Made by a program: the position numbers and the translations under genes
In this document: positions 1 through 64,000 of the stretch, in pieces
How positions within the stretch are numbered: position 1 is the first letter of the stretch
How the letters are laid out: the number at the start of each line of letters is the position of its first letter
Sequence record: PQ464590.1
DNA: 64,000 bases
Direction: 5' to 3' (one strand)
Notes under the pieces: generated by a model
What the model was told of the DNA's origin: nothing
Seen by the model: only the letters and a program-made list of their open reading frames with translations
The model's database searches: none

Positions 1-778
1 CGTTCTCAATAGCCATATCAATCATGAAGAGTGCCTTATCAGCTTCTTCAAACTGGTTCGCTTGGTCAATCATGGATTGGACAAACTTATCACCTAAGTA
101 CTCATTAGTCTTACGGAACTCTTCTTCTGTCATGCTTGCAGTACGATCACGTGGCTCCGGTCTAGCTTCTGGTGCAGGTTCATCAACCACATCAAGTTCT
201 AGATCGTCTTCTTTTCCTGGACCTTCGATAGCACCCATTACAGTACTGAAGACTTCAGTAGGTTCAGTACTACTATTACCTTCCATACTATCAAGTACAC
301 GCTGTGCAGTATCTTTCATTTGTTCTTTAGGAACAGCTTGAAGTGCCTGAACGATACCCTGAATGAGATTAGGCTTCTGTGCGAAAATCTTCATTAAGCG
401 GTCTGAAAGCTCCTTCACGGGGTTTTGTGCTTTAGGAGCAGCAGCAGGTTCAGCTTTAGGAGCAGGGGCTTCAGGAGCCTTTGGTGCAGCTTGAGCGGTA
501 CGTGCAGCATCCATATCTGCTAGCTGTTGTTTCTGGGCTGGATTCAGTAAACCCAAAGAGTTGAAGTACTTCAACTTTTCATGTGGATTCATCTTAGATG
601 TATCAGTGCCAGCAGATGCAACGGTGTTTGCTTTACCAGCAGCACCAGTACCCTGATTACGGGAACCACGGGAACCTTGACCAGCATCATGTGAGTTTTT
701 GCGACGGTTTTCATCACTCCACTTAGCTGAGTGACCGGACAGCGTAGCACCGTTCTTGGACTTAAAATTTTCAGGCAT
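1..778 (-). CDS. hypothetical protein, Ala/Pro/Glu-rich (3' partial, runs off window)
   Basis: ATG at 778 after ATAGGAGG RBS; open frame to the window edge (MPENFKSKNGATLSGHSAKW...APKAPEAPAPKAEPAAAPK...); not in ORF track because no stop in window. Confidence 0.8.
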   Translation of the reverse strand, partial: MPENFKSKNGATLSGHSAKWSDENRRKNSHDAGQGSRGSRNQGTGAAGKANTVASAGTDTSKMNPHEKLKYFNSLGLLNPAQKQQLADMDAARTAQAAPKAPEAPAPKAEPAAAPKAQNPVKELSDRLMKIFAQKPNLIQGIVQALQAVPKEQMKDTAQRVLDSMEGNSSTEPTEVFSTVMGAIEGPGKEDDLELDVVDEPAPEARPEPRDRTASMTEEEFRKTNEYLGDKFVQSMIDQANQFEEADKALFMIDMAIEN

Positions 779-830
779 AACGCCTCCTATAATTAATTAC
801 ATTAAACTATGTGATTATTTATAGCATATC

Positions 831-858
831 AAAAAGGGCTGACCGAAGTCAACCCCTT
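831..858 (-). terminator. intrinsic terminator with CUUCGG tetraloop
   Basis: GGGTTGACTTCGGTCAGCCCTTTTT on minus strand; same hairpin recurs at 4412-4440. Confidence 0.8.
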
Positions 859-862
859 GTAC

Positions 863-1714
863 TTATTTTCTTTTCGCAATAGCCACGATATCAGTATATG
901 GTAAATTGAATTCACGGAAAATTTCCAGTGCTTCATCTTTATCACATGCCAGTACATCAACGTCGTGGTAATATGGACCATTCTCGAACTTCACATTGTA
1001 CAGTACCGCATCACGTTTCGGTTCTTTCTTTTCAGGAACAACTTCAGGTTCCATTACGTACTTCAGTACTGAACTTAGTTCGTGAATACGCTTCTCATTA
1101 CCAGGTTTAGTGGCAAGAGATTGAATCTCTGTTACTAAACGCAGAATGTCAACTTCACGGATGAAGTCAGTTTTTACTGGCTCTTGCAGTACTGGATTCA
1201 GAATATGATCTTCCATCTTTGGAAGTTCAGTACTTTGTTTATAGAACCGCAGGATTGCATCATAACCAACCAATACATAACCATGTGGAAGATGAAGCTT
1301 GTGTTTCTCTTTGAAATCACTATATTTCAGGTTTTCAAGAATTTTACCGACTTGTTGCATCGTAAGGTTCGGGTGAATATACGATCCAGACCGTGTACCT
1401 TCTTCAAATGTAAACACGTTGTTATTCATCTTAGTGCCTTTATTCTCGTAATACCCGTTGTTCCCGTAACTGAAGTTTTGGATTGCTGAATATCCCACCA
1501 AATATAAATTATCTGGACCGTGAAGTTCGTGTAAATGGTTATACGCACTTTTCTTCAAGGTTTTGAGAAGTTCACGTACATCAGCAAGTGTCAACTCGTA
1601 GTGATAAAAATTACCATAATCTTTATCATTTTTCATTTCAACGAATGTATAAGTTCCAGATGTTGCCATATTATTATCCGATTTTTGTTGTGGGCGGCGT
1701 GGTGGAATTGGCAT
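863..1714 (-). CDS. hypothetical protein
   Basis: 283 aa ORF; C-terminal small domain VLYNVKF...VLACDKDEA. Confidence 0.8.
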   Translation of the reverse strand: MPIPPRRPQQKSDNNMATSGTYTFVEMKNDKDYGNFYHYELTLADVRELLKTLKKSAYNHLHELHGPDNLYLVGYSAIQNFSYGNNGYYENKGTKMNNNVFTFEEGTRSGSYIHPNLTMQQVGKILENLKYSDFKEKHKLHLPHGYVLVGYDAILRFYKQSTELPKMEDHILNPVLQEPVKTDFIREVDILRLVTEIQSLATKPGNEKRIHELSSVLKYVMEPEVVPEKKEPKRDAVLYNVKFENGPYYHDVDVLACDKDEALEIFREFNLPYTDIVAIAKRK

Positions 1715-1977
1715 TAGTGAACCTCCACACGATAAGACCAGTCATACATAATTCCATCATCGTCATCATCTTTTTCATGAAGACGTAGTGTACCCTTTTC
1801 TGCAAGAATGTCAAGCATTTCGTACGGTACTAACGAATTTCCGTCAGCGTCAAAGAACTTACCCAGCTTCAACAAACGATCTTGAAGTTCACGCGGGGTA
1901 CGATACACCATCACGTTGTATCCTTCATCTACTGAAGTAAACACTTTACCTTCAAACGGTTTCATAGGATCTTTCAT
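1714..1977 (-). CDS. hypothetical protein
   Basis: 87 aa; TAATG-type overlap with neighbours. Confidence 0.8.
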   Translation of the reverse strand: MKDPMKPFEGKVFTSVDEGYNVMVYRTPRELQDRLLKLGKFFDADGNSLVPYEMLDILAEKGTLRLHEKDDDDDGIMYDWSYRVEVH

Positions 1978-2276
1978 TAGATAGTCTCCATGCTGTCAAT
2001 TACTGAACGAAGTTCATCTACGTATGCGGCTTCTTCATCAGTTGCTAAACCATCAAACTGTTCTTCGTACGCATCAAGGATTGATTGAACTTCATCAACT
2101 GTATATACGTAGAAGGAATAACCAGTACTGTACAGGAACAAGTTAGTACCGCACACGTTGTGCTTCTGGTTCGCATCGTCAGTGATAACACCATCGCGAA
2201 CGAAGTAGTTATTACCACGAGTGAACATTTCGAGTTCATGTCCAGAACCGCCGCTCATCTGCACTAAACGAATCAT
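1977..2276 (-). CDS. hypothetical protein
   Basis: 99 aa; GAGG RBS. Confidence 0.8.
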   Translation of the reverse strand: MIRLVQMSGGSGHELEMFTRGNNYFVRDGVITDDANQKHNVCGTNLFLYSTGYSFYVYTVDEVQSILDAYEEQFDGLATDEEAAYVDELRSVIDSMETI

Positions 2277-2331
2277 TTTTAATTCCTCTCATTAAGGTGT
2301 AGGAGAACTATACCAGTTCTCCTACATTCTG

Positions 2332-2880
2332 TCAAACAGTTTCTTTGTAAAGATTAGCCTCGATAAAATCGTGACAATCACCGTCTTTGTATTTCACAGT
2401 GAGGTTACGCGTACCTACCAGACGTTTCATGCGACGAATAACGGAGGACATATCAGTACTCCAGTTCATGTAGATACCATCAACTTCACCAGGAAGGGAA
2501 GGTACGTACAGAACATAATCGTACTGCATCTTCAGGCGATGTCCACGCTTCTTCAGTGCTTCTTTGTACTGCTGAACGTTCTCAAAGAATACCTGATAGC
2601 AGACCTTCTCTCCGTTCTCAATGCGGTAATCACGATACGCTTTACCTGATTCCCAATCTTCTTCCGTTGGGTTAGGGTTGACGCAAGCGAAGTTCTCGGA
2701 CATATAACCAGGATTCAGGTCAACAATCCATTCACGTTCGAATACGTACAGTACAGCTTCGTGTCCACGGAACTCTTTGCGGTACTTCGGCATGATCTGG
2801 ATGTGATTACGTTTATAGCCGTACATCTGCCAGCCTGGGTACTCACCACTGAACTCACATACTTTCTCGATACCAGCCAT
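2332..2880 (-). CDS. hypothetical phage protein
   Basis: 182 aa, tiles the operon. Confidence 0.8.
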   Translation of the reverse strand: MAGIEKVCEFSGEYPGWQMYGYKRNHIQIMPKYRKEFRGHEAVLYVFEREWIVDLNPGYMSENFACVNPNPTEEDWESGKAYRDYRIENGEKVCYQVFFENVQQYKEALKKRGHRLKMQYDYVLYVPSLPGEVDGIYMNWSTDMSSVIRRMKRLVGTRNLTVKYKDGDCHDFIEANLYKETV

Positions 2881-3080
2881 TATTCACCCTTCTCTTTGAT
2901 GTTCTTAGTGGTACACCATGCACGTGCGTAAGTAACACCAGTTAGACCTTTAGTATTACGCACGAACTCTTGTGCAGCAGCCTGGCAGTCGGTATGAATA
3001 CTATAACCACCTTCAGTTGCAACACCACCACCACCTGATGAAGCGGCGAATACCATTGTGAGTACAAATTCTTTGATCAT
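2880..3080 (-). CDS. hypothetical secreted/membrane peptide
   Basis: 66 aa, hydrophobic N-terminus, two Cys. Confidence 0.7.
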   Translation of the reverse strand: MIKEFVLTMVFAASSGGGGVATEGGYSIHTDCQAAAQEFVRNTKGLTGVTYARAWCTTKNIKEKGE

Positions 3081-3355
3081 TGTGGAAGCTCCGGTAAAAA
3101 TTCAATAGTGAGGCCGTGTGCGTACAAACTAATAACAGCATTGTACTTACCAGCCATTGCTTGTAGTGCAATCAGGGAATCTTTAGTTACTTCATCCCCG
3201 TCAGTTAGAACTATCACACCACCTTTTGGTTGTTTGACCAATATGGAATTGCCTTTTAGTAGATACGTAACTTTATAATGCATTAGAAATTGATGTGCAC
3301 CATAAGTGTACTCAATTTCTTCACCATTAGTAGTTTCAATCAGTACTTTGATCAT
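3077..3355 (-). CDS. hypothetical protein
   Basis: 92 aa, ATGA overlaps. Confidence 0.75.
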   Translation of the reverse strand: MIKVLIETTNGEEIEYTYGAHQFLMHYKVTYLLKGNSILVKQPKGGVIVLTDGDEVTKDSLIALQAMAGKYNAVISLYAHGLTIEFLPELPQ

Positions 3356-3612
3356 TCAGCAATCCTCAAAATATAAGCGTCTACGCTGGATTGGTCTTCA
3401 ACAAACAACGCAGCCCAACGACCTGTGTTCTTGTTACGTACTATACCACGAACAGTATTCACTGTAAAGGTACTTTTGAACGGACGCTTCGATTTCTTCT
3501 GAACCTTCTGATTCAGTAATGAAGCTGCATGGTTGAACTCAATCAAATCATTATCGATGTGATGAGGTTTCATGAGTTTCATTTCTTCAGTACTGGGTGG
3601 ATAGTACTTCAT
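3352..3612 (-). CDS. hypothetical protein
   Basis: 86 aa, ATGA overlaps. Confidence 0.75.
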   Translation of the reverse strand: MKYYPPSTEEMKLMKPHHIDNDLIEFNHAASLLNQKVQKKSKRPFKSTFTVNTVRGIVRNKNTGRWAALFVEDQSSVDAYILRIAE

Positions 3613-3731
3613 TGTTTTTTCCCGTAACGGTCTGAACCAGTATCGAGGAAGTACTTAGCGAAGAACGGTAAGCCGTACTTCAAGCCCCAGTAAATCCACA
3701 GAGAATAGAAACAGTACTGGATAACAGTCAT
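3609..3731 (-). CDS. small hydrophobic peptide (40 aa)
   Basis: Hand-translated MTVIQYCFYSLWIYWGLKYGLPFFAKYFLDTGSDRYGKKQ; ATGA overlaps at both ends. Confidence 0.6.
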   Translation of the reverse strand: MTVIQYCFYSLWIYWGLKYGLPFFAKYFLDTGSDRYGKKQ

Positions 3732-3943
3732 ACAATCATGTCCCATACTGCTACACTGTGAACTTCAAAAGTAGTCTGACCGTCACGTTTATTAGAATAA
3801 AATTCGATCAGCTTGTCTTCTGCTTCCATGTCGTTTTCAGCCTGGACAACATGGGAGTACTGGAATTCTGAACTAGTTGTAGTACCATCTGCGAATGGGG
3901 TTAGTGCTACTGCTGTTCCAGTACAAGTAAAGAGCTTAGACAT
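3728..3943 (-). CDS. hypothetical protein (paralog of 28505-28711)
   Basis: VVQAENDMEAEDKLIEFY vs TISADNETEAENKVYAYF. Confidence 0.75.
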   Translation of the reverse strand: MSKLFTCTGTAVALTPFADGTTTSSEFQYSHVVQAENDMEAEDKLIEFYSNKRDGQTTFEVHSVAVWDMIV

Positions 3944-3954
3944 AATTATGTTCC

Positions 3955-4377
3955 TTATTTGATTTCGTAGTTGTAGCCAATGATAGGACGCAGAGTACGT
4001 GCACGGCGTTTAGCATTTAGTTCAGTACCGATCACTTCATTGAACTTTTTATCACCGATGCTGTATGATAACATATATACTTTCTTTGTCAAGCAGTACT
4101 GAATCATTTTATCCAGTACTTCCAAACGTTCAGCAGCGTATGGATTGGTTTCAGGGTCAAACTTGTTCATGTACGTATGATACTCTTCTTCTGAACCCTC
4201 GATAGGCCAGCAAAGTACTTTACCAAAGATATGATAGCAAACCTCTGAATAAAATTGTGCAGTACTCATCTGTTCAGGAGAACGAACCTTCTTGAACAAA
4301 TTATGACAGATACCAACTGTAGGATCACGATCACCCGCTTTAATTGCCATCAAAGCACTATAGAACAAATTGTACAT
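3955..4377 (-). CDS. hypothetical protein
   Basis: Start moved to MYNLFY after GAAGGAG RBS. Confidence 0.75.
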   Translation of the reverse strand: MYNLFYSALMAIKAGDRDPTVGICHNLFKKVRSPEQMSTAQFYSEVCYHIFGKVLCWPIEGSEEEYHTYMNKFDPETNPYAAERLEVLDKMIQYCLTKKVYMLSYSIGDKKFNEVIGTELNAKRRARTLRPIIGYNYEIK

Positions 4378-4411
4378 AATCACTCCTTCGTATTTTGAAT
4401 ACTTATAATAC

Positions 4412-4440
4412 AAAAAGGGCTGACCGAAGTCAACCCTTTT
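4412..4440 (-). terminator. intrinsic terminator with CUUCGG tetraloop
   Basis: Same hairpin as 831-858, followed by U-run. Confidence 0.8.
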
Positions 4441-4621
4441 CTAGCAATTCACGAACTAATTCATTTACACGCTCGATACTGTGACATTCCTCAACCGTAA
4501 AATAGTCCCATGTACGACCGTACGAGCGGGGATTATCCCCTTCCATCCACTTCTTCACATGGAAGATCTGTAAATGAGGGTGCTGGTACACCCTGATTTG
4601 ATTATCGTTGTAGATAAGCAT
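4430..4621 (-). CDS. hypothetical protein
   Basis: 63 aa ORF. Confidence 0.7.
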   Translation of the reverse strand: MLIYNDNQIRVYQHPHLQIFHVKKWMEGDNPRSYGRTWDYFTVEECHSIERVNELVRELLEKG

Positions 4622-4627
4622 AACGCC

Positions 4628-5620
4628 TCAATCTTCAATAGTTACGAAACGTTCCTGAAGAATACGACGAATCTTAGCAATGATATCATTGTAGCGACGG
4701 TGAATAGTACTGTGAGACTTCATCACCTTCCCTTTACCATCCACTAGACCTTCACCCTCTAATGATGCAAACGTACTCTCAACATGCCCATTGAGGCCGT
4801 GTACGCGACTTAGAAGGTACTGTTCTGCTTCTGGTAACTCTGCCATTACTAAGGCAATAACGTCCATTGCGGAGCCTTGTAGCGTGTTCTCTGACAAAGT
4901 GTATTCTTTGGAAGTACCTTTTATAATGTCACCAAGTGACATATCAGCATTATCCGCATTGTTAGAGATTGGCGTATCAATACTCATAGGACGATTGTTC
5001 ATATATTCAAGAACACGCTGTACTGCACCAGTATCGATACCAGTACCAGTACTGATCTCGTCCACATTAGGAGTGCGTCCGAACTGTGAACGATGCTTGT
5101 CGATGTAGTTCTGGATCTGAATGTTGTTCACAGATAGATAGCGAGGAATCGCAATCATACGAACATCATCATTGCCATAGTTGTACATGGTCTGACGGAT
5201 AGACACAGTTGCGTAAGTACTAAACTGAATCTTCTGGTCTAGATCATAGCGTTGGATAGCTTTGAGCAATCCTTCAAAACCGTACTGTACTTTATCCTGG
5301 AACGGAATGTTACAGGTACACTGTCTTGCTTGTCCGTACACTAGACCTGCATTGTATTTCACAATCAGGGCTGTATTCTTCTTTACATTATTTCCTGCTC
5401 TGATTTCTTGAATCAGATGTTCATTAGTCAAATTGTTAGGTAACTTCAACTTACTATCCAGTACTTCAAATGCTCCTTCAGTACTGTCAGTTTCAACCTC
5501 TTCAAGAACGTCATCTGACCCCTGGTTTCTCAAGTTCTCGAATGATTCATTCTCATTCTCAAAACATTCATCAAGTACTTCTTCTGGGATCGATTCTAGA
5601 TTTAGTTGTTCAACAGTCAC
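4628..5620 (-). CDS. RNA polymerase sigma factor (sigma70 family)
   Basis: Region 2 motif QYGFEGLLKAIQRYDLDQKIQFSTYATVSIRQ; region 3 GRTPNVDEIS...SIDTPI; acidic N-terminus; divergent region 4. Confidence 0.9.
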   Translation of the reverse strand: MTVEQLNLESIPEEVLDECFENENESFENLRNQGSDDVLEEVETDSTEGAFEVLDSKLKLPNNLTNEHLIQEIRAGNNVKKNTALIVKYNAGLVYGQARQCTCNIPFQDKVQYGFEGLLKAIQRYDLDQKIQFSTYATVSIRQTMYNYGNDDVRMIAIPRYLSVNNIQIQNYIDKHRSQFGRTPNVDEISTGTGIDTGAVQRVLEYMNNRPMSIDTPISNNADNADMSLGDIIKGTSKEYTLSENTLQGSAMDVIALVMAELPEAEQYLLSRVHGLNGHVESTFASLEGEGLVDGKGKVMKSHSTIHRRYNDIIAKIRRILQERFVTIED

Positions 5621-5681
5621 TTATATACTTCTCCTAAAAAAATTAAAGATGTACCTCATTGTACATCTTTACATTGCCAGT

Positions 5682-5828
5682 TTATAACTCTGTAGCCCTG
5701 GCAGTTGCTACATTTGGGAACATGCGTTTAACATTACTCTGGGCTTGTTCCTTGTTGCCAGCTTTAACCATGACAACGTTCCAGATACTTGCACCAATTA
5801 ATAAGTACTCAACGCTAAAAGTTTTCAT
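5682..5828 (-). CDS. small hypothetical protein (48 aa)
   Basis: GGAGG RBS; MKTFSVEYLLIGASIWNVVMVKAGNKEQAQ... Confidence 0.65.
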   Translation of the reverse strand: MKTFSVEYLLIGASIWNVVMVKAGNKEQAQSNVKRMFPNVATARATEL

Positions 5829-5886
5829 AATCGCCTCCGTTATTAGATGCGATAATCTTAACTGAATCGCTGAGCACTGTCAAGCT

Positions 5887-6135
5887 TTATGGGAAAGGGA
5901 TTGGAATGATTCGTAAGTCTTTGTAATCAGGGATGATAAGATCAACCTCTAGGTAGTAGCTACCTGCTGCTTCATTATTATTCAGGATCATTTCGAACAG
6001 TACTGTGTCGGATTCTAAGTGCACCTCGCTATGATCATATGCAAGCACTTCATAGAGAGTACCCGCACCATCATCAGTAATATACTTTGTGACGTACTTT
6101 CCAGTACGGATATTCTTCAATGCGTATTTGAACAT
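5887..6135 (-). CDS. hypothetical protein
   Basis: 82 aa ORF. Confidence 0.75.
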   Translation of the reverse strand: MFKYALKNIRTGKYVTKYITDDGAGTLYEVLAYDHSEVHLESDTVLFEMILNNNEAAGSYYLEVDLIIPDYKDLRIIPIPFP

Positions 6136-6136
6136 A

Positions 6137-6646
6137 CTAAATCCTGTACAAGTTTATGTTATCATCAGTGAACTTATCTTTATCCTTCACTTTCCTGAAC
6201 TCTTCAATTACATGTTCAGCGGTGAATATAAATGGGTTATGACGAGTACTGTATTTGAGGTGTGCAATTGCATCATATCCTGAACCTAAGATACTAACCC
6301 AGTTATCTCCGAAGAAGATAGTCTTCTTGTGGAACTTACCTTTGAATACGTACATGTAAATGGCATAATCTTTGCCGATGAGCATACACTCACACTCTGG
6401 TGTATTCTTAGTTACAAGAACTTCCTCATGATTCACTAAGTACCTGATGATGCGATTAATAGTACTGACATCACCTGCTGCTACGAATAGACGATCATGG
6501 ATGTAGATAGCCTTTTGGTTCGTTACCTTGTACTGTACTGAATGAGTTAACGGGAAGAACCCCGCGAAAAAGCGGGGTGTGCTTTCTGTCACTCGTGAAT
6601 CTGTCATTGCTAAACCTAGACTTTTACTCACGAATACAGTTGTCAT
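6137..6646 (-). CDS. putative Ntn-hydrolase (proteasome-beta/HslV-like) peptidase
   Basis: N-terminal MTT, then AMTDSRVT, FVAAGD and ILGSG, matching the Ntn-protease pattern. Confidence 0.6.
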   Translation of the reverse strand: MTTVFVSKSLGLAMTDSRVTESTPRFFAGFFPLTHSVQYKVTNQKAIYIHDRLFVAAGDVSTINRIIRYLVNHEEVLVTKNTPECECMLIGKDYAIYMYVFKGKFHKKTIFFGDNWVSILGSGYDAIAHLKYSTRHNPFIFTAEHVIEEFRKVKDKDKFTDDNINLYRI

Positions 6647-7125
6647 TACTTATCCTTTTCTTGTGTCTCTTTGTACGAGTTGTCAAATTCAGAGAGTAAT
6701 ACCACCTTCTCTACATCAGGGTAGTACTGGATGAGGAATGATTTTAGTTCATCCTTCATGTCCTTCGCTTTGATAGAGAGCGGTTTCCAGTACTGTTGTA
6801 GTGCTTGGTCTTTCTTGTGCATATTATCTAATGCCGCTACAGCTTTGTCAAGATAATACGCAAGAGAACCAGTCATTTTTACCAGACGTACCTGTTTGAC
6901 ACGGAATTTTTCATCACTAAGTCTAACTGCAACCTGCAAATCACGATACGCAGAACGTACGTCTGATAGTGTCAGACACTCCAGCTTGTACAGTTCTTCG
7001 CAGATTTGAGTAACACGCTTCTCTGCTTTCTTCTGCTTCGAATCTGGATTATCGATTGAACCGTATAATTCAGACACCGGATATTTCTTAGAGTTCAAAA
7101 TGAACTGCTCAATTTTACAAAACAT
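6646..7125 (-). CDS. hypothetical helical protein
   Basis: 159 aa. Confidence 0.75.
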   Translation of the reverse strand: MFCKIEQFILNSKKYPVSELYGSIDNPDSKQKKAEKRVTQICEELYKLECLTLSDVRSAYRDLQVAVRLSDEKFRVKQVRLVKMTGSLAYYLDKAVAALDNMHKKDQALQQYWKPLSIKAKDMKDELKSFLIQYYPDVEKVVLLSEFDNSYKETQEKDK

Positions 7126-7379
7126 TACAGTACTCCATGCAGTTCGAGGATCTTACGCTTGGCCTGGTTGATACTAACGATACGTTCTTGCTTTAGACCG
7201 AAGAGGCGATCAATTTTTTTGTACAACTCCTCAACTTCTTTAGTCACCACATTACCAGTACTTTGAAGAAGAGTGTTAATCGTTTCATACGAGTTCTTGA
7301 TCTGCCCAGCCAAGTCAGCTTCATCTGCCTGGTGACGAACAATACGTTCAACTAGTACTGAAATTTGTTGATTGCTCAT
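7125..7379 (-). CDS. hypothetical coiled-coil protein
   Basis: 84 aa; resembles neighbour 7379-7642 in helical pattern. Confidence 0.7.
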   Translation of the reverse strand: MSNQQISVLVERIVRHQADEADLAGQIKNSYETINTLLQSTGNVVTKEVEELYKKIDRLFGLKQERIVSINQAKRKILELHGVL

Positions 7380-7642
7380 TATACTTCTCCACGGATAATA
7401 GTAGTAATTTCATTTTGCAGTTTCAGAATACGTTCCGAAACGTCATTGATTTCGTCACGTAACGCTTTGAGCGTTTCACTAACACGCATTTTCTCTTTCT
7501 CTGATAGTGCACTATCATCGGCTGGGTATGCATTTACGCAACGGCGGTACTCAACCATAGTCAGAGACTGTTCTTCCAGTAGGTCAGTAATAAGACGCTG
7601 GTTTACTTGTACCTTTTCAATAAGTGATTGATTTACACTCAT
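7379..7642 (-). CDS. hypothetical coiled-coil protein
   Basis: Start moved to MSVNQ. Confidence 0.7.
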   Translation of the reverse strand: MSVNQSLIEKVQVNQRLITDLLEEQSLTMVEYRRCVNAYPADDSALSEKEKMRVSETLKALRDEINDVSERILKLQNEITTIIRGEV

Positions 7643-8001
7643 GCTTTCCACCCGTTCAGTACGAACATCTCATCGAGTTCTTTGTTGAAGTTAGGATACA
7701 GATCCATATCACGCAGGTTAGCGAAACGGATATCCACCGCACAGCTTAGGCAGTACTTCTTGTTAGTACCACTGTTATAGAAGTGCACATGGTTCTGTGT
7801 CTGACATGCAGTACGATTACACAGTGTATCACCTTTACCTTCACGGCTTGAACCGTCGAAGTTATCACCGCGTGGTGCACAGTCCATCATCAACTGGTGT
7901 ACTTTCTGCAATTCTGTACGAGCACGTAGCTCCAGTGTATTGCCAGTGATGCCTTTAGTGCGTTCAAGATATTCTTTGCGGTCTTTGATAAATGCGTACA
8001 T
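7639..8001 (-). CDS. hypothetical Cys/His-rich (Zn-binding) protein
   Basis: CNRTAC...HVHFYN...YCLSCA. Confidence 0.75.
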   Translation of the reverse strand: MYAFIKDRKEYLERTKGITGNTLELRARTELQKVHQLMMDCAPRGDNFDGSSREGKGDTLCNRTACQTQNHVHFYNSGTNKKYCLSCAVDIRFANLRDMDLYPNFNKELDEMFVLNGWKA

Positions 8002-8035
8002 GGTAGTCTCCGGTTAATACTGTTAAAGTTCATTA

Positions 8036-8064
8036 AGTATAGCCCATTGCTTCAGTACTGTCAA
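8036..8064 (-). promoter_or_regulatory. sigma70-type (early) promoter
   Basis: TTGACA-N17-TATACT, overlapped by inverted repeat GCCCATTG/CAATGGGC. Confidence 0.75.
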
Positions 8065-8077
8065 TGGGCTTTTTGAT

Positions 8078-8458
8078 TTATTCTACATCCCACGCTTCAT
8101 CAGGGATTTCCAGATCCGGTACGTACTTCAGAATCGTACAGATTGGAGTTTCGATGATACCTTGATCCTTCAGAATCTTCTTGTAACGAGCAATGACATC
8201 AGGAGTAGCTTTAGATGTATAACCCATGCGGTTCAACAACAGTTCTGCTTCCTGACTCAACATAGAAGTACTTTGTGTAGCCCACTCTGGGAGATCAATC
8301 AGAGTCTGGATTACACCATCGTTCGACATCACCGCAATCTTGAATTTGTTATCAGAACCCATCAATACACGACCAGTAATGATTACATTAGTGTCGTTGT
8401 TTTTGAAAGAGAAGATGTCATCAGTGTTGATTTGCAGCATTGATACATGTTTCCACAT
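8078..8458 (-). CDS. hypothetical protein
   Basis: 126 aa; GAGG RBS. Confidence 0.8.
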   Translation of the reverse strand: MWKHVSMLQINTDDIFSFKNNDTNVIITGRVLMGSDNKFKIAVMSNDGVIQTLIDLPEWATQSTSMLSQEAELLLNRMGYTSKATPDVIARYKKILKDQGIIETPICTILKYVPDLEIPDEAWDVE

Positions 8459-8491
8459 TTTTTAATTCCTCTGTGTTGTTAAGATGGAATA

Positions 8492-8520
8492 AGTATACCC
8501 GCTGACCTCATAGAAGTCAA
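8492..8520 (-). promoter_or_regulatory. sigma70-type promoter
   Basis: TTGACT-N17-TATACT inside inverted repeat ATACCCG/CGGGTAT. Confidence 0.7.
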
Positions 8521-8533
8521 CGGGTATTTTCAT

Positions 8534-9001
8534 TTATTTTTTAGTTGTTCCAGCTTTAGCCTGATCCAGTACTAGCTCGTCACCACCACGATTCACCGCA
8601 CCTTGATACAACAACACACTAAAGAAGATGTTCAGGGTTGCGAGTCCTTCCCACACGAAGTCCCATTGGATGTTCATCACAGCCATCACCAGTATTGGGA
8701 AGATAATGATGAAACTGTACTTCTTGGAACCAGCTTCGCGGTACTCCCCAATACGCATATCTTTGCATGAGGATTCGTCTTTACCTTCCCCAATACTATC
8801 ACCGAAACGCATGTTCAACATGAAGATGTTGATGAATAACATTATTGCACCAGTAAGGAATGTGCCGACTATACCAATTCTGTACCAAGATTCAGCGAGT
8901 ACAAACTCGATACCATAAACACTACTAAGACTCTTGTAGAACACAATACCAGTAATCAGGTACATTGCTAGTAACCATTTGTAATATACGCTACGGGTCA
9001 T
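8534..9001 (-). CDS. multi-pass membrane protein (paralog of 8998-9441)
   Basis: About 4 hydrophobic segments; shared KKYSFI motif. Confidence 0.75.
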   Translation of the reverse strand: MTRSVYYKWLLAMYLITGIVFYKSLSSVYGIEFVLAESWYRIGIVGTFLTGAIMLFINIFMLNMRFGDSIGEGKDESSCKDMRIGEYREAGSKKYSFIIIFPILVMAVMNIQWDFVWEGLATLNIFFSVLLYQGAVNRGGDELVLDQAKAGTTKK

Positions 9002-9441
9002 TGATCAATCTCCACACGTTCAGCTTTAGAGTCTTTAGCTTTCTGGATGACACGTTCTTCTTCATCGAGATCCCAGAACTTATTATGACGGCGGCGTAAG
9101 ATTTCCAGAATCAAGAATACTACACCTTGAATGAATGCTGCACCATATGATGCTTGGTGGAATGAAGTAGCCACTGGTACGAACAGAATCCACGTCCAGA
9201 TGAATGAGTACTTCTTATCACCAAAAATCTTTACATGTTCAGTACGAGTAAAGAAGTCATTACCACAGATTCCGAACAGGTACAGACATCCTGCTACATA
9301 CAGAGTAGTAACAGCATAACCGTACTGTTCAGGAACACTCTTCAGATCAATACCGTAATGTGGCCCGAATTGTTCACCGAGAATTACAAAACACGGTAGT
9401 AGGTACAAAAAAAAGTAAAAACGAAATACTTTCCAAATCAT
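8998..9441 (-). CDS. multi-pass membrane protein
   Basis: About 4 hydrophobic segments; GDKKYSFIW. Confidence 0.75.
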   Translation of the reverse strand: MIWKVFRFYFFLYLLPCFVILGEQFGPHYGIDLKSVPEQYGYAVTTLYVAGCLYLFGICGNDFFTRTEHVKIFGDKKYSFIWTWILFVPVATSFHQASYGAAFIQGVVFLILEILRRRHNKFWDLDEEERVIQKAKDSKAERVEIDQ

Positions 9442-9490
9442 ATACTATTCCTCTATTTGTTAACGTACCCCCGAACGAGGGTACTAACGA

Positions 9491-9898
9491 TTACTTCTTG
9501 TACTCGCCTTTCATGAGCTTAGCGAGGGCTAGTGCTTCAGCAGTTTTCTTGTCAACAAACTTACCATCAACAATGAAACCATCCATCACGGCTTGTTTAC
9601 TTGGATACTCACCAATCTCATCCAGGAATACATGACGCTTTGAAATGACAGTCGCTTTCACGTACCCAGTACTGAGTACTGTAGTTAGAACATGTAAGTG
9701 TACTGCGACTGGTGAACCTTCCCAGTACATAACCCACTGAACGAAGTTCATGCTGTCTTTGTTCTCTGGAGTTACTTTGAGTTTTAGGCACTGATTGAAT
9801 GTGTACTGTTTGAATGTATCGTCCATCACTTCATTGATGGAAAACCAACCATTCCGAGCACCCATTGCAGTTGTGAATTTTGTTCCTAGCACGTTCAT
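9491..9898 (-). CDS. hypothetical protein
   Basis: Start moved to MNVLG after AGAGG. Confidence 0.75.
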   Translation of the reverse strand: MNVLGTKFTTAMGARNGWFSINEVMDDTFKQYTFNQCLKLKVTPENKDSMNFVQWVMYWEGSPVAVHLHVLTTVLSTGYVKATVISKRHVFLDEIGEYPSKQAVMDGFIVDGKFVDKKTAEALALAKLMKGEYKK

Positions 9899-9948
9899 GT
9901 GACACCTCTTGATCAATTTATCGGAGTAATACTAACACACTGACGTAC

Positions 9949-10431
9949 TTAGGTCAATAATGTTTTCTTTTTCTTTTTCTTCACTTCTTTATCAGAATCG
10001 TACCACAATCTCATTACTTGAATCAGAACGTGTGGCGGAAGTACAATAGTACTACCATCTACTAATACACTGTTCTGTTCAGTGATATAGAACTTTATTG
10101 GGTATCGGCGGTTCTTACTAACCTCCCCAAGTTCAATATGATTCTCTGTACGTTTCATCTGAACAGTTCCTGATCCAAGAGCATTCAGATACATCTCCAA
10201 TTGCCGTGCGGAAGTTTTGTTGAAGTAACTACTTCCCTCCTTTAGAAACACATCAGGGATAAAGATAGCGTACCAGATTGATGAGAAGAATGGTGATGCG
10301 TAATGTTCATTCACATTGAATGCATAACTAATCTCTTTGTTGAATATAAAACAGAACGCAACAAAGATGATGAATATATAGAAGATCCATTCGAACCAAC
10401 CTATGTCGTTTAGTAATTCAAGGAACGTCAT
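9949..10431 (-). CDS. membrane-anchored hypothetical protein
   Basis: N-terminal TM segment; poly-Lys tail. Confidence 0.75.
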   Translation of the reverse strand: MTFLELLNDIGWFEWIFYIFIIFVAFCFIFNKEISYAFNVNEHYASPFFSSIWYAIFIPDVFLKEGSSYFNKTSARQLEMYLNALGSGTVQMKRTENHIELGEVSKNRRYPIKFYITEQNSVLVDGSTIVLPPHVLIQVMRLWYDSDKEVKKKKKKTLLT

Positions 10432-10814
10432 TATTCCTCCGAGTCATATAAAATGTAATTGAACTCCTTGACACACTCTACAGTGTAGTCGTTGTTGTTC
10501 ATTTCAGTACCGTTAATATACGAATTAGTATTAAACGGCTTCATGGATAGATCAGTACTGCTAGTTTGTTCTTCATACCATTGCTTCATCCATTTGTAGT
10601 ACGTTTGATGACCAGTTTGAAACAACTTAGCATCTGCATATCCTATACAATACGAGGGATCAGTTGTAATCCCTGTATTGTAATGCTTCTTATAGTTCAC
10701 ATCAGTGTCAACCGCATGAACTACATGAATTACAGTACTGAACAGTACAGATACCAAGAAATATGTTACTCTGCGTACACATAAATCTTTGATACAACCT
10801 CCCCGTTTTCCCAT
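10431..10814 (-). CDS. hypothetical protein, possible signal peptide
   Basis: 127 aa; start uncertain. Confidence 0.6.
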   Translation of the reverse strand: MGKRGGCIKDLCVRRVTYFLVSVLFSTVIHVVHAVDTDVNYKKHYNTGITTDPSYCIGYADAKLFQTGHQTYYKWMKQWYEEQTSSTDLSMKPFNTNSYINGTEMNNNDYTVECVKEFNYILYDSEE

Positions 10815-10999
10815 TCAGTTTTGATTCTGCGGTGCTTTACAACACCTGAATACATTTGACCAGATTGATTCTCATACTCTAGAACATCACCAGGTTCTGG
10901 TATGAAAGGTACTGTAATGTTGTACACGTGACGATTATGTGCATAATGATGACCAATAATTACAGTAAGTTTATGCATCTTTTGGCTCCAGATGTACAT
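10766..10999 (-). CDS. hypothetical protein (similar to 10971-11180)
   Basis: VPFIPEPGDVLEY vs VPVLPNVGDTVTY. Confidence 0.7.
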   Translation of the reverse strand: MYIWSQKMHKLTVIIGHHYAHNRHVYNITVPFIPEPGDVLEYENQSGQMYSGVVKHRRIKTEWENGEVVSKIYVYAE

Positions 11000-11180
11000 T
11001 GATTGCTAAGCAGTCACCCGAATCTGGGTGATTCACGTACTCAATTGAACGTACTGTGAAGCTCTCACTACGTACATATAAGTACGTAACAGTGTCTCCA
11101 ACATTAGGTAGTACTGGTACGTTCAGTTTACGCTCTTCGTTGTAACCGTCACATGGAATAACTGCTGTACACTTTAGCAA
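10971..11180 (-). CDS. hypothetical protein
   Basis: 69 aa. Confidence 0.7.
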   Translation of the reverse strand: MLKCTAVIPCDGYNEERKLNVPVLPNVGDTVTYLYVRSESFTVRSIEYVNHPDSGDCLAINVHLEPKDA

Positions 11181-11755
11181 AATTTCATCTCCTGAAGTGG
11201 TTTGATGATATCCAGTACTGGATGGTTTTCGATCTTATCACGACCTTCAACGCCTGTCCAGATAGTTGGGATAGAAGCGATATCTTTCACATCGTTGAAA
11301 CCTTCAAACGTGAACTGCTGTTTACGTTCGTTGTACACAGCCCACACAACAACATCAGCTTTCTTTTCGATGTTCTTCAACTGTGCCGCACTGATGCATG
11401 GTCCAAAACGTACCCATGAACCGTACTTGATACATTTCACTTCAATACGTAGACCACTAACGATCAGGTCACATTCTGCATCACGGGAATCATCCTGGAA
11501 TGCTGCATCGATGTTCAGATCTTTACCCAGTAGTTCTTCAATCTCTTCCATTAGAACAAGAGTAGCGTGCTCTGCAACCATTCCCACGAAGTGGGAGTGT
11601 GCGTGGTTCTGACCGTACGGAGATTTACGACCCTTCATGATGTTTTCGTAACGCTTGGACTTTGCAATTGCTTTAGCCATGTATGCGTCAGCTTCATCTT
11701 TGAATAGCTGGATAACCATCTTGTCATTTTCAATTTTCAGGCGAGATTCGCTCAC
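11174..11755 (-). CDS. putative PD-(D/E)xK-fold nuclease
   Basis: GMVAEHA...ECDLIVSGLRIEVKC resembles the E...D...EVK catalytic pattern. Confidence 0.6.
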   Translation of the reverse strand: MSESRLKIENDKMVIQLFKDEADAYMAKAIAKSKRYENIMKGRKSPYGQNHAHSHFVGMVAEHATLVLMEEIEELLGKDLNIDAAFQDDSRDAECDLIVSGLRIEVKCIKYGSWVRFGPCISAAQLKNIEKKADVVVWAVYNERKQQFTFEGFNDVKDIASIPTIWTGVEGRDKIENHPVLDIIKPLQEMKFC

Positions 11756-11787
11756 AGTTAAATCCTCTTTCTAATTAGTGTTCATAA

Positions 11788-11816
11788 ATTATAACCCAGT
11801 ACTGGAGCGTTGTCAA
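11788..11816 (-). promoter_or_regulatory. consensus sigma70 promoter
   Basis: TTGACA-N17-TATAAT. Confidence 0.85.
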
Positions 11817-11922
11817 CGCATAAATTTCATTGCGTACCTTTGGCTTAGAGAACGTATTATACACCCCTGAACTTTAGAGTCAATAGGTAAATACTGTACA
11901 CAACTATAAAAGGGAGATTCCG

Positions 11923-13062
11923 ATGGCAAAACCAATTGCAGGGGTAAATGATTACCCATATGGTATTTGTGGTTTTATAGTAGATGGAGCATTCATTCAG
12001 GGTTCTAAGTATAAAAATCTTCGAATTTATAAACAACGTTCTGACGTTATGTTCGATTTGATAAATCCAAATACAGGCACTATCTACCAAAAACTTCTAA
12101 TTACTGGCCTGAATATAAATGGCGAAATACTAGACTACTCTAAAAGTAATGATGAAATACTAAATGAGATTCCTAAAAATACATTCTTCGTGCGTGGTTA
12201 TAATGAAGCGAAAAGTATTGAGGGATTTGCAATTCGTTTCTTACTTAATAAGATTATTCTAAGTTCAGGAAGAACGCTATACGACATGTATACACCATCA
12301 TGTTCTATTCCACTACCTAATATCGATAACATAGTAATCGCACCAGTAACAGTAGATGATACAGAAATCACAGGTACTATCACTAGTTCAGCAGGACCAA
12401 TTGATCCAACTGATATGATAGTTGAACTTACTTTACCTGATGGTACAGTACTAACAACTACGGTTGACAGTACTGGGAAATTTACATTCTCTCCAGTAGA
12501 CTTAAGCTCTCATGGTACAGGAACAGCAACCATTGTGATTAAATCTCCTAATTACAATGAAGCTACCGCTACGTTTCCTATTTTAGATTCTGATGAAGAT
12601 TCTGATTATGTAACATCAATCGCTCTAAGTCCAGCAGACTTTATTATCGACGCTGATAAATACGTAGCTGTAATTACTGAATCATTACACCTACGCGGTA
12701 CTGATGTGGTAATTCAGCTTCAGAGTGCATCACAGGAAGTATTTTTCAGTACTGTGTCAGTGAATGGTAATGGTGATATTACCATTACGCAAGATACCAA
12801 TGACGCTGTGAACGTGGTTCTTATTGGTAAAACACTTAAGAGTACTCCATTTAAAACTGCACTTACTTGGGTTGCAAATGGTGATGGTACTAGCTCTGCA
12901 AGTATTCCAAAATCAGAACACAATAAAGAAAACATTTCATTCACTGTGTACGATGGAACTAATGTCGTAAGTACTGAAGCAGTAATTAACAGTACTGAAG
13001 ATTTAACTCTAACTTCTTATGAAGAGTTTGTTGGTTCAGTTGTAATTGTAGGTAAAGCATAA
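11923..13062 (+). CDS. Ig-like domain protein, probable virion decoration/structural protein
   Basis: Only clear plus-strand gene; GGGAG RBS; Ig-like segment VTVDDTEITGT...LTLPDGTVLTTTVDSTGKFTF; two beta-rich C-terminal repeats; TAAATA upstream. Confidence 0.7.
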   Translation: MAKPIAGVNDYPYGICGFIVDGAFIQGSKYKNLRIYKQRSDVMFDLINPNTGTIYQKLLITGLNINGEILDYSKSNDEILNEIPKNTFFVRGYNEAKSIEGFAIRFLLNKIILSSGRTLYDMYTPSCSIPLPNIDNIVIAPVTVDDTEITGTITSSAGPIDPTDMIVELTLPDGTVLTTTVDSTGKFTFSPVDLSSHGTGTATIVIKSPNYNEATATFPILDSDEDSDYVTSIALSPADFIIDADKYVAVITESLHLRGTDVVIQLQSASQEVFFSTVSVNGNGDITITQDTNDAVNVVLIGKTLKSTPFKTALTWVANGDGTSSASIPKSEHNKENISFTVYDGTNVVSTEAVINSTEDLTLTSYEEFVGSVVIVGKA

Positions 13063-13064
13063 TT

Positions 13065-13091
13065 AAAAAAAGGCTCCCATTGGGAGCCTTT
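13065..13091. terminator. bidirectional terminator
   Basis: AAAAAAAGGCTCCCATTGGGAGCCTTT between convergent genes. Confidence 0.85.
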
Positions 13092-13095
13092 ACTT

Positions 13096-14043: not shown

Positions 14044-14073
14044 TGTGTATCTCCGGTTTATTGTGTACGAAGT

Positions 14074-14105
14074 TATTATATCACATTATTTGGGTTCATC
14101 CCAAA
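14074..14105 (-). promoter_or_regulatory. class-2 phage promoter TTTGGGAT-N11-ATGTGATATAATA
   Basis: One of five copies with identical 32 bp span. Confidence 0.75.
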
Positions 14106-14118
14106 TATTTCTCACGTT

Positions 14119-14529
14119 TTACATATCGCTATATGGTTTGTGCCATAGCTCATCGTTATACAAGCCTAACTGGTCACGTGCATACGTGGCTATGTTATGC
14201 ATTGCTAACTGTAGTTCCTTTTCGCATTCCATAGACAGTAATGGGTATAATGTACTGGCCTGAAAATACTCTTCTTCTGTTGCATTCGGAAGTCTTATAA
14301 CACGTTCCTCGTACGAGGATGATATACTCTGCATATCCATGTGGTCAGAAGTAACATTCTCTGAACGAATATGGTACACCATTCTCGTATTATAATTCTT
14401 CAGTACTAGATAGTCACCTTTCATTCCTGTACCAGACATGTAGTACTCAAAAGCACCAAGTTCACCATCTTCTACTATAGTGCGATTCAGGTCTTGTAGG
14501 AACTTCAGAAAGTATTCATTTAGCATCAT
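14119..14529 (-). CDS. EEExFQxST-module family protein
   Basis: C-terminal ATEEEYFQASTLYPLL. Confidence 0.8.
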   Translation of the reverse strand: MMLNEYFLKFLQDLNRTIVEDGELGAFEYYMSGTGMKGDYLVLKNYNTRMVYHIRSENVTSDHMDMQSISSSYEERVIRLPNATEEEYFQASTLYPLLSMECEKELQLAMHNIATYARDQLGLYNDELWHKPYSDM

Positions 14530-14681
14530 TCCTCGCGGTACAGAATTTCAGGTCCAATGGATTGCTCAACACGAATAGTATCGTAATGTTCCATTAGCTG
14601 ACGTTCGATGTCGATTTGTAGTTCTTCTGCATCTTTAGCGGATAGCTGTACAAGATGCCCGTTGATAATTAGTTTGATCAT
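14526..14681 (-). CDS. small hypothetical protein (51 aa)
   Basis: Hand-translated MIKLIINGHLVQLSAKDAEELQIDIER...; ATGA overlap. Confidence 0.6.
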   Translation of the reverse strand: MIKLIINGHLVQLSAKDAEELQIDIERQLMEHYDTIRVEQSIGPEILYREE

Positions 14682-14690
14682 ATCATTACC

Positions 14691-14888: not shown

Positions 14889-14920
14889 CTACTACGAACC
14901 ACCATGATAAGTTATGCAAT

Positions 14921-52572: not shown

Positions 52573-52663
<91 letters not shown>

Positions 52664-58465: not shown

Positions 58466-58466
58466 T

Positions 58467-62613: not shown

Positions 62614-62673
62614 TTTCGTTTTCCTTTAATTACGGGGTACACGCATAATACCCCGTTCTAACCAAGCTGTCAA

Positions 62674-63360
62674 TTACTTTTGATCAAGAATTTTTAGACA
62701 GTATGAAATCTGTAATGCTTCACGTGCTGCATCATAAAGCGGGTGATGCAATTCAAGCACTCCTACCGTACCGTTCATATTGCTTACAAACGCTCCTAGA
62801 ACACGCTGTACGATGTCGTCCATCTCTGCACGCTGTTCTTCATTCAAACGGTTCTTGAGCGTCCTGGCGTTTTGAGGGGACGAATAATGCCATAGATCTG
62901 CATTACCATACAGTACTCTTGAGTTCTCTTGAAGAATAGAGCAATCGAAGTGGCAACCATTACCATACACTTCAGTACTGATAGAATCATCAACCCCGAA
63001 TTCATTACCGTATACGAATTGTTGAATTACATGCGGGGTGTAATGAACATAAGGATAGATGTATGAAACATTAGTATGAATTGCAGGTTTAGTTAGTGTG
63101 AATGACTTGATCATTTCAGCATGTGCACCTGGAAAATCTTTAGCACACATGTTGTGCCAAAAGTCCATAGTACTAGCACCAACACGCAAGCCCACGTCAA
63201 GCTGATCCTGTACTGGTTGTTGAATGTACAGGTATTCTAGATGGTCTGTATCAGGGGCATCAGGAATTGCAACGAATGCGAAATTAGGTACAACAACGGC
63301 ATAACCTGAATTCTCTGGATTTCCTAGTGATTCAATATCTAGGGCTGTCTTTCTACTCAT
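62674..63360 (-). CDS. DEDDh 3'-5' exo(ribo)nuclease
   Basis: TALDIESLG (ExoI), YGNGCHFDCSIL (ExoII), HHPLYDA (ExoIII). Confidence 0.8.
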   Translation of the reverse strand: MSRKTALDIESLGNPENSGYAVVVPNFAFVAIPDAPDTDHLEYLYIQQPVQDQLDVGLRVGASTMDFWHNMCAKDFPGAHAEMIKSFTLTKPAIHTNVSYIYPYVHYTPHVIQQFVYGNEFGVDDSISTEVYGNGCHFDCSILQENSRVLYGNADLWHYSSPQNARTLKNRLNEEQRAEMDDIVQRVLGAFVSNMNGTVGVLELHHPLYDAAREALQISYCLKILDQK

Positions 63361-63374
63361 ATATACTCCAATGT

Positions 63375-63402
63375 AAAAAAGGTACTCCGAAGAGTACCTT
63401 TT
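63375..63402 (-). terminator. intrinsic terminator with CUUCGG loop
   Basis: AAAAGGTACTCTTCGGAGTACCTTTTTT. Confidence 0.8.
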
Positions 63403-63417
63403 GTTTAGTTATGTATC

Positions 63418-64000
63418 TTACTTACGAGCATCTTCGCTGATGCTACGCAGGGTGTCACGCAGTTCGATACGCATCTGGGCCATTTCACGCTTAGCTGCTT
63501 CACGTTCTGCTTCACCTGCTTTCTGTACTGCGATGGTATCTTTGATACCCTGAATCGTAGTTTTCTGTACTTCACGTAGTGTTTTGATATCTACTACTCC
63601 ACGTTGTGCAGACTTAGCTGCTGTTACCATGTTAGTACTGGTCTGTTTCGCACTTTCTAGGAACAGACGGTTCGTTTCATCGTCCATCATCTCACCCAGT
63701 TCGTTATCACGACGCTGGCGGTCAGTAATCAGACCTTGTGCAATCTTAGATTTCCACGCTGGAATCACGATTGTTTTCAGAGATTCGAACTTGTCAATGG
63801 TGTTGATGTTCACACCACGCATTGCCATGATTTGTGGTGCGTTCAACTGGCACAGGTTGATAAGGCGGTTCACTTTATCTTCCTGCTTAGACAGTGCTTC
63901 ACAAATCATTTTCTGATGATCCAGAACGTGCATTTCTGTTTCTGGATTTTCTAGCAGGTCTTTCAGTTTAGCGTCTTCAACTTCACGCACTTCCTGAATG
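63418..64000 (-). CDS. telA: TelA-family toxic anion/tellurite resistance protein (5' partial)
   Basis: IVIPAWKSKI...DDETNRLFLESA...AAKSAQRGVVDIKTLREVQ; frame stays open to the window end. Confidence 0.75.
   Translation of the reverse strand, partial: IQEVREVEDAKLKDLLENPETEMHVLDHQKMICEALSKQEDKVNRLINLCQLNAPQIMAMRGVNINTIDKFESLKTIVIPAWKSKIAQGLITDRQRRDNELGEMMDDETNRLFLESAKQTSTNMVTAAKSAQRGVVDIKTLREVQKTTIQGIKDTIAVQKAGEAEREAAKREMAQMRIELRDTLRSISEDARK

Follow-up and report, generated by a model that had tools for sequence, protein, structure and literature searches.

The stretch of DNA analyzed here (the "window") comprises 64,000 bp of the genome of Erwinia phage Hallingskeid and is identical in sequence to positions 62001–126000 of record PQ464590.1; the entire record was used as its context, and positions given below are those of the window unless the record is named. 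Hallingskeid is a virulent jumbo myovirus of Erwinia aphidicola with a 366,158 bp genome, and it belongs to the Rak2-like group, in which Asteriusvirus, RaK2, GAP32 and CBB are its kin. The window includes an orphan cytosine DNA methyltransferase gene, the tRNA genes of the phage and several promoter-like elements (Table 1), and along its whole length it carries the subject of this study, the 6 bp palindrome AGTACT, whose best form is the 8 bp palindrome CAGTACTG. The original prediction for this DNA, made from its letters alone, rested on a hand count of 8 GTAC and 4 AGTACT in nt 1–660, and our recount showed that count to be exact (GTAC starts at 98, 141, 243, 267, 295, 498, 566 and 648). 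Neither the papers on Hallingskeid, RaK2, Sharanji and fEgEco12 nor the rest of the open-access literature that we searched gave an earlier account of the abundance of AGTACT or CAGTACTG.

AGTACT occurs 245 times in the window, where an order 0 Markov model predicts 20.8, an excess of about twelvefold. The expected number rises with the order of the model, to 58.9 at order 2, 117.8 at order 3 (which takes tetramer content into account) and 194.8 at order 4; these high-order expectations absorb the signal because the motif itself makes AGTAC and GTACT abundant. AGTACT is nonetheless the top hexamer in the window at every Markov order, and at order 4 its z is still 3.6. The window also contains 807 GTAC (230 expected) and 85 CAGTACTG (0.8 expected). 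The corresponding values for the whole genome are 1313 AGTACT against 120 expected (11–12-fold, or about one per 280 bp with a mean spacing of 278 bp), 412 CAGTACTG against 4.66 (~90-fold) and 3916 GTAC against 1306 (three-fold).

Coding sequences of the window hold 219 AGTACT sites, compared with 48.0 ± 6.2 (z 27) when synonymous codons are shuffled such that every protein sequence and the global codon usage are retained, and with 28.6 ± 5.2 under codon permutation. In these sequences 94 Ser-Thr pairs are encoded by in-frame AGT-ACT where 19.7 are expected, and two dipeptides are driven up by the motif, Ser-Thr (139 vs. 75.5) and Val-Leu (178 vs. 112). All three reading frames are used (94/43/82), and the density is about the same in coding and non-coding DNA (3.86 and 3.59 per kb, respectively). 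The view that the signal resides in the DNA rather than in the proteins is thus borne out by its use of all frames, its equal density between genes and its survival of codon shuffling, and the proposed controls for tetramer and codon content leave the observed/expected ratio well above 1 (order 3 and synonymous-shuffle values above).

The possibility that codon usage, amino-acid content, paralogous repeats or faulty assembly produces the excess can in our opinion be practically dismissed. AGT, ACT, GTA and TAC are indeed the most used codons within their families, and the intragenomic repeats are motif-rich (8.2 AGTACT per kb); however, synonymous shuffling accounts for only 48 ± 6 of the 219 sites, though this null carries the inflated codon usage, the non-coding density matches or tops the coding density, the repeats make up just 2.1% of the genome with 3.49 sites per kb outside them, and the signal recurs in independently sequenced genomes from several genera. 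The shuffles, the non-coding density and the repeat coverage together rule out codon, amino-acid and repeat artifacts.

The distribution of the word among phages was followed in a sample of the clade consisting of Escherichia phages EJP2, G17 and 121Q, Klebsiella phage RaK2, Cronobacter phage GAP32, four to five metagenomic relatives of Hallingskeid and one IMG/VR contig. AGTACT is the hexamer of rank 1 or 2 (alongside its half-site CAGTAC) in every Rak2-like genome sampled, and each of them shows the same extension to CAGTACTG. Major capsid protein identity is at least 60% within the clade and drops directly to ~31% beyond it. Slicko01, the nearest outgroup by capsid protein (31% identity), has AGTACT at expectation, and the enteric or vibrio phages arall (L018) and ICP1 (L019), which carry the nearest non-clade homologues of the methyltransferase, have 0 (8.5 expected) and 1 (7.1 expected), respectively. 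The trait is a property of the whole Rak2-like clade that is lacking in the outgroups tested, and the excess is a real, clade-wide, hyper-abundant palindrome that is selected or actively maintained.

The consensus of the word is Y-AGTACT-R, with C and G favored at the flanks. Its information lies in the six core positions plus ~0.4 bit at each of positions −1 and +1, with none further out; position −1 is C in 56% and G in 5% of sites, and +1 shows the mirror pattern. The GTAC center is all-or-none: with C as its next base CAGTA is 12-fold over expectation, with A, G or T it is at only 1.3–1.6-fold, and GTA[AGT] is at expectation (0.97–0.99). One-letter deviants of the octamer have observed/expected ratios of 9–20 at positions 1/8, 7–8 at positions 2/7 and 0.5–2.9 at the four core positions. 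The half-sites are balanced on the coding strand (814 CAGTAC vs. 862 GTACTG; 250 vs. 273 for the one-sided variants), and the signal is therefore dyad-symmetric and a property of duplex DNA rather than of codons or of RNA from one strand. A strand-specific RNA motif is ruled out by this symmetry, and neighboring copies able to pair occur less often than at random.

Along the genome the density of AGTACT is flat around gene starts and ends (3–5 per kb), with a dip over ribosome-binding sites. It is highest in intergenic DNA (4.76 per kb), intermediate in genes of <200 aa (3.75–3.78 per kb) and lowest in genes of at least 400 aa (2.86 per kb). The sites are slightly more evenly spaced than an inhomogeneous Poisson process would place them (coefficient of variation 0.94 vs. 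1.06 ± 0.03), and gaps shorter than 30 bp number 104 rather than 139 ± 11. A LexA-box arrangement (TACTG-N10-CAGTA, two copies 18 bp apart) was considered and rejected, as the 18 bp gap is not enriched. In 20 kb bins of the record the motif peaks at the left end (133 and 103 sites), is high near the right end (87 and 85) and is lowest in the structural-gene block (42–55), a pattern that fits either lesser constraint in early genes or an end-related role. The case for a recombination hotspot that shuffles paralogs is weak: 18% of repeat end-points lie within 10 bp of a motif compared with 11.8 ± 2.0% expected, but this is confounded by the fact that the repeats are themselves motif-rich promoter elements.

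Individual sites are conserved in position. Between Hallingskeid and a relative at 73% nucleotide identity AGTACT is in place at 61% of sites, compared with 24% for all hexamers (p = 5e-11), and a second, overlapping relative gave 62% and 26%. Among closer pairs, the unshared fraction of AGTACT is 5.9% between G17 and 121Q (97% identity; 17% for control hexamers) and 16% between L013 and L014 (94% identity; 35% for controls). Where the amino acid is conserved, the synonymous forms AGT, ACT, GTA and TAC are retained in 91% of cases inside the motif, compared with the 64–72% expected from the same codons elsewhere (z 3.8 and 4.7), and the constraint is therefore on DNA, not protein. Conservation shows a dose-response, in that bare GTAC is at background, GTAC with one A/T flank is slightly higher at 0.49–0.59 and AGTACT is at 0.64–0.88; the constrained unit is therefore the hexamer, in its full form YAGTACTR, and the surplus of GTAC consists in large part of a surrounding halo of sites that are nascent or in decay. 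This retention, in position and at synonymous codons, shows that something maintains the sites, in line with the positive selection or mutational driver to which the excess had been attributed. At positions 2270–2280 of L013 the motif has moved by 3 bp relative to L014 (AGTAGTACT vs. AGTACTACT), so that a loss is offset by an adjoining gain. A polarized count of gains and losses between L013 and L014 gave 8 events only, with an outgroup too distant for a fair control.

Short spacings of 20 and 22 bp between sites led to a family of strong sigma-70 type promoters in the early left-end region, with the architecture (A)AGTAC-TTGACA-N8-CAGTACTG-TATAAT. One copy of the motif abuts the −35 hexamer and the other lies directly upstream of the −10 hexamer, so that the two are 20–22 bp, or about two helical turns, apart; the spacer is otherwise variable, and the motif is retained. 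AGTACT stands at offset −7/−8 from the −10 hexamer in 23 of the 127 promoter-like matches in the genome, where fewer than one is expected, and RaK2 (seven copies in 11 kb), 121Q, G17 and EJP2 have the same architecture. This fixed position applies to a subset of about 24 of the 1313 sites, and the remainder are flat relative to genes. The two-copy layout is that of an operator pair and suggests that a protein reads the word. Record positions 890–20007 (L003), mostly on the minus strand, show repeated near-consensus sigma-70 promoters before small early genes at the left end, with TTGACA/TTGCAT, a 16–17 bp spacer and TATAAT/CATAAT, in at least two subfamilies.

The abundance of AGTACT stands out, as had been supposed, against an extreme avoidance of other palindromes. 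GCGC occurs neither in the 64 kb window nor in the 366 kb genome (556 expected), and the genome also lacks 22 of the 64 six-bp palindromes as well as BsaI and BsmBI sites. GGTACC is one of those at zero (~40 expected from flank frequencies), the three-fold enrichment of GTAC notwithstanding. No palindrome other than AGTACT is strongly enriched; TGTACA (2.1×) and CGTACG (1.8×) come next, and CATATG and TATATA are at 1.1× and 0.35×. The same genome is thus an extreme case of restriction-site avoidance by a phage, and yet AGTACT, a genuine type II site (that of ScaI), does not fit the avoided class, being enriched 11–12-fold instead of depleted. Since arall and ICP1 are nearly devoid of AGTACT, ScaI-type restriction may be a real pressure that Rak2-like phages somehow escape. 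GCGC is at zero in every Rak2-like sample and normal in the outgroups; either extreme avoidance of restriction or a phage factor whose target is GCGC in host DNA alone would fit this pattern. A 50 kb sample of E. coli K-12 served as the host contrast: AGTACT is at 0.22 and GCGC at 7.1 per kb there, and CAGTACTG does not occur, so that these two words set phage and host DNA sharply apart. This contrast is compatible with a putative role of the words in sequence-based self-marking.

The features of the window are collected in Table 1. AGTACT had been described as recurring throughout genes, promoters and non-coding RNAs; the last detail is not borne out, as the seven tRNA genes of the window contain 0 AGTACT and 1 GTAC, where about 2 and 7 are expected at genome density, and the motif thus does not extend through these structured RNA genes. 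AGY Ser codons are normally read by the anticodon GCU, so the ACU anticodon of the tRNA-Ser in Table 1 is unusual; it pairs exactly with AGU. Of the 1232 Ser codons 376 are AGU, more than any other, and in-frame AGT-ACT adds to its use.

Table 1. Features of the 64 kb window of the Hallingskeid genome that bear on the AGTACT word (window positions).
Feature	Position	Strand	Basis or remark
AGTACT field, 245 sites, of which 85 are CAGTACTG	1–64000		Counts; mean spacing ~260 bp
Four hand-counted AGTACT sites (97–570)	97–102, 242–247, 266–271, 565–570		Recount
Sigma-70-type promoter-like TTGACA-N..-CAGTACTG-GG-TTATAAT	11788–11816	−	Motif in spacer just upstream of −10 hexamer; member of the promoter family
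Seven tRNA genes (all those of the phage)	24857–52663		
Promoter-like element, TTGA-CAGTACTG	31471–31498	−	CAGTACTG begins within −35 hexamer
Promoter-like element	37623–37651	−	CAGTACTG overlaps −35 hexamer; second CAGTAC in spacer
Orphan C5 cytosine DNA methyltransferase, 285 aa	42901–43758	−	Pfam PF00145, E 4e-41
tRNA-Ser, type II, anticodon ACU	52573–52663	−	

The closest statistical parallel is HIP1 (GCGATCGC) and the alternate palindromes of cyanobacteria, to which the word had been likened. HIP1 likewise is an octamer with a nested core in tens- to hundreds-fold excess, occurs within and between genes and in all frames, has deviants at its first and last positions, is conserved between genomes beyond protein constraint, and has a function on which there is no agreed answer (PMC4390886, PMC5861425). 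The phage word shares its octamer abundance, independence of frame and coding, outer-position deviants and conservation beyond background; it differs in being AT-rich, embedded in promoters and carried by a virulent phage clade rather than a cellular chromosome. HIP cores are in addition methylated by cognate orphan methyltransferases, whereas literature and sequence indicate no cognate core-methylating enzyme here, and the published methylome of Hallingskeid lacks modification at AGTACT. In that work, comparison of native with amplified DNA by nanopore sequencing, the very kind of methylome check that had been proposed, reported modification only at GATC (6mA) and CC[AT]GG (5mC) (PMC11780129). 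The likeness to HIP1 therefore stands for the statistics (a nested octamer at ~90-fold, with outer-position deviants) and is not supported for the tie to a methyltransferase.

It is accordingly quite unlikely that a phage orphan methyltransferase targets AGTACT or GTAC and that methyl-directed (Vsr-like) repair, or selection for the mark, creates and maintains the sites. Several facts speak for such a mechanism besides the resemblance to HIP1. Two orphan methyltransferases are encoded in the genome, the C5 enzyme (PF00145) and a small Dam-family enzyme (PF05869); the former has orthologues in all Rak2-like phages and is under strong purifying selection (97% amino acid vs. 85% nucleotide identity to a relative), and the 278 bp mean spacing is near that of GATC in E. 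coli. On the other hand, nanopore sequencing lists no AGTACT in spite of its 1313 copies (PMC11780129), bisulfite evidence from RaK2 indicates CpG methylation (PMC3622015), and the purging of GGTACC suggests that GTAC is unprotected. The deamination neighbors AGTATT/AATACT are not depleted (observed/expected 1.2), losses of sites do not favor positions 2 or 5, and a phmmer search with E. coli Vsr against all open reading frames of at least 50 aa found no homologue, so the features of Vsr-type very-short-patch repair are absent. In addition, arall and ICP1 have C5 enzymes of 46–52% identity and no enrichment of AGTACT. The idea of a methylation-directed repair mark is not supported by these comparisons. 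The C5 enzyme lacks most (~45–50 residues) of the target-recognition domain of the arall and ICP1 homologues while having all catalytic motifs, and its matches in PDB span the catalytic core alone, so its specificity is not inferable from them; its target may be CCWGG or CpG, depending on the paper (PMC11780129, PMC3622015). It is a candidate partner of the word by analogy with HIP1, but the link to AGTACT is not supported.

The explanation that we favor, tentatively and with somewhat less than even confidence, is that AGTACT (Y-AGTACT-R, best form CAGTACTG) is a selected dyad word in unmodified double-stranded DNA that a putative dimeric protein, in all likelihood encoded by the phage, binds in a sequence-specific manner. 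The grounds for a protein-binding site are the dyad symmetry, the sharp bounds and all-or-none core, the conservation with its dose-response, the even spacing, the placement in promoters, the occurrence across the clade, the lack of reported modification and the contrast with the host. One putative protein would read both the two promoter sites, which are 20–22 bp apart on one helix face, and the ~1300 sites of the genome; its operator-like binding at promoters would compete with RNA polymerase, and the genome-wide sites would serve as address tags by which phage DNA is marked, organized and set apart from host DNA. Among the roles listed in the original prediction, that of a protein-binding signal has gained most, as the motif is built into a conserved early-promoter architecture.

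A number of points weigh against this explanation. No protein that binds AGTACT has been identified, 1300 sites far exceed the need of any regulator, and a repair bias that restores sites predicts conservation equally well. The flank coupling ratios given the core (1.09–1.25) are those of near-independence, and strong dimer cooperativity is not evident. The conservation tests cover about 13–20 kb of alignable relatives. A genome-wide drive could have carried the promoter copies along as passengers, many of the motif-bearing promoters are duplicated elements, and the terminal TG of the motif coincides with the TG of an extended −10 element.

Other explanations must be weighed against a protein-binding word. 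We consider it unlikely, while granting it appreciable weight, that AGTACT is the preferred substrate of a phage DNA enzyme required along the 366 kb genome, for which a T4-type topoisomerase II (4 bp stagger centered on GTAC), a nicking or recombination-initiating endonuclease, or a primase (5′-NNGTA resembles T7/T4-type GT-containing sites) are candidates. A short, sharp-edged palindrome with an all-or-none 4 bp center is typical of the sites of DNA-acting enzymes, the distribution is uniform and slightly regular, and the phage encodes a topoisomerase II, a DnaG-type primase, endonuclease VII, several HNH endonucleases and SbcCD/UvsX. Against these stand the report of no strand breaks, nicks or coverage breaks for Hallingskeid in a study that did detect nicks in another phage (PMC11780129), the usually weak and extended preferences of type II topoisomerases, and the fact that a trinucleotide alone is enough for priming while CAGTA without the following C is not enriched; moreover, a work-site of this kind leaves the placement in promoters unexplained. 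Of similarly low probability in our judgment is a neutral origin, in which a mutational or repair bias keeps turning near-sites into AGTACT and the product has no function; short-patch heteroduplex correction during recombination-dependent T4-like replication and a polymerase context bias are candidate drivers. The density of sites does track freedom from constraint, from intergenic DNA through short and long genes (values above) to the tRNA genes at 0, the word is surrounded by a halo of one-off variants that are themselves enriched, the amino-acid content is shifted by the motif (Ser-Thr 139 vs. 75), and a restoring bias would likewise yield positional conservation. However, strong directional conversion should deplete some class of one-off neighbors and none is depleted, no enzyme is known that would be a candidate, the enrichment does not extend to other palindromes, the sites are more evenly spaced than random, and the motif has fixed functional positions in conserved promoters.

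We regard as very improbable a purely physical explanation, by which the flexible pyrimidine-purine steps (CA/TA/TG) of the word make it a bendable hinge that eases condensation or packaging with no reader protein. The sites are spread evenly across the genome, structural genes included, and jumbo capsids hold at least 350 kb, as such a role would have it; but the equally flexible words TGTACA, CATATG and TATATA are not enriched in this way (above), base-specific reading is suggested by the fact that only the exact hexamer will do and that G is strongly excluded at −1 (5%), and no such word is seen in the outgroups.

Comparison with known systems delimits the binding-site explanation further. 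The SlmA-binding sequence of E. coli (GTGAGTACTCAC), one of the nucleoid-occlusion and ParB-type sites, shares with the phage word an AGTACT center and the character of a dyad that is read by a dimer and scattered over a chromosome as a marker. SlmA requires G and T at positions 1–2 and a purine at position 3 of GTGAGTACTCAC (PMC3020112). An SlmA site also has A and G at positions 4–5; at SlmA position 3 the phage motif is C in 56% and G in 5% of cases; the genome holds 5 GAGTACTC and 412 CAGTACTG, and the full site GTRAGYRCTYAC has no match in its 366 kb. The flank positions and the lack of an GTRAGYRCTYAC match rule out that AGTACT is an SlmA-binding site. Chi, KOPS and DNA uptake sequences are, like AGTACT, short words that are enriched in a genome and scarce in foreign DNA and that let a protein tell its own DNA; they differ in being asymmetric and biased in strand or orientation, in occurring every 1–5 kb (280 bp for the phage word), and in that none is palindromic. 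The nick motifs of phages T5, tf and Rembedalsseter are also short, enriched and conserved within clades, with an unclear role (PMC11780129), but they are asymmetric, one-stranded and present ~10 times per genome. The distribution proposed for a reader of AGTACT, one protein along the genome that also switches early promoters, resembles that of p6 of phage phi29. This p6 protein coats the phage genome and also represses early promoters; it differs in that it reads bendability, not a defined word, and we know of no p6-like protein in Rak2-like phages.

Hyper-abundant short palindromes have hitherto been a cyanobacterial puzzle, tied to methyltransferases and without an agreed function, and the same statistical phenomenon is now seen in a clade of virulent jumbo phages. 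The phage system is more tractable, as its genomes are small, easily grown and recodable, its DNA is apparently unmodified at the motif, and the motif lies within a defined promoter; the reader protein and the function are open to direct test by pull-down with CAGTACTG and CAGTTCTG duplexes, promoter mutagenesis and recoding. As practical consequences, ScaI and RsaI will shred Rak2-like genomes, and the abundance of AGTACT together with the absence of GCGC is a simple marker of Rak2-like contigs in metagenomes. That a phage under extreme restriction avoidance affords ~1300 copies of a true type II site bears on restriction escape, and the finding is equally relevant to the way in which jumbo phages that have no protein nucleus distinguish their DNA from that of the host. 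For the Rak2-like phages we offer, as a speculation with a minor but real chance of being correct, that a sequence-based self/non-self code may replace base modification: unmodified YAGTACTR every ~280 bp would be read by a dimeric phage protein that coats or organizes the genome and silences early promoters, the absence of GCGC, a word abundant in enterobacterial hosts, would let a phage nuclease or other factor hit host DNA only, and both traits would go back to a joint origin in the ancestor of the clade and have persisted ever since.

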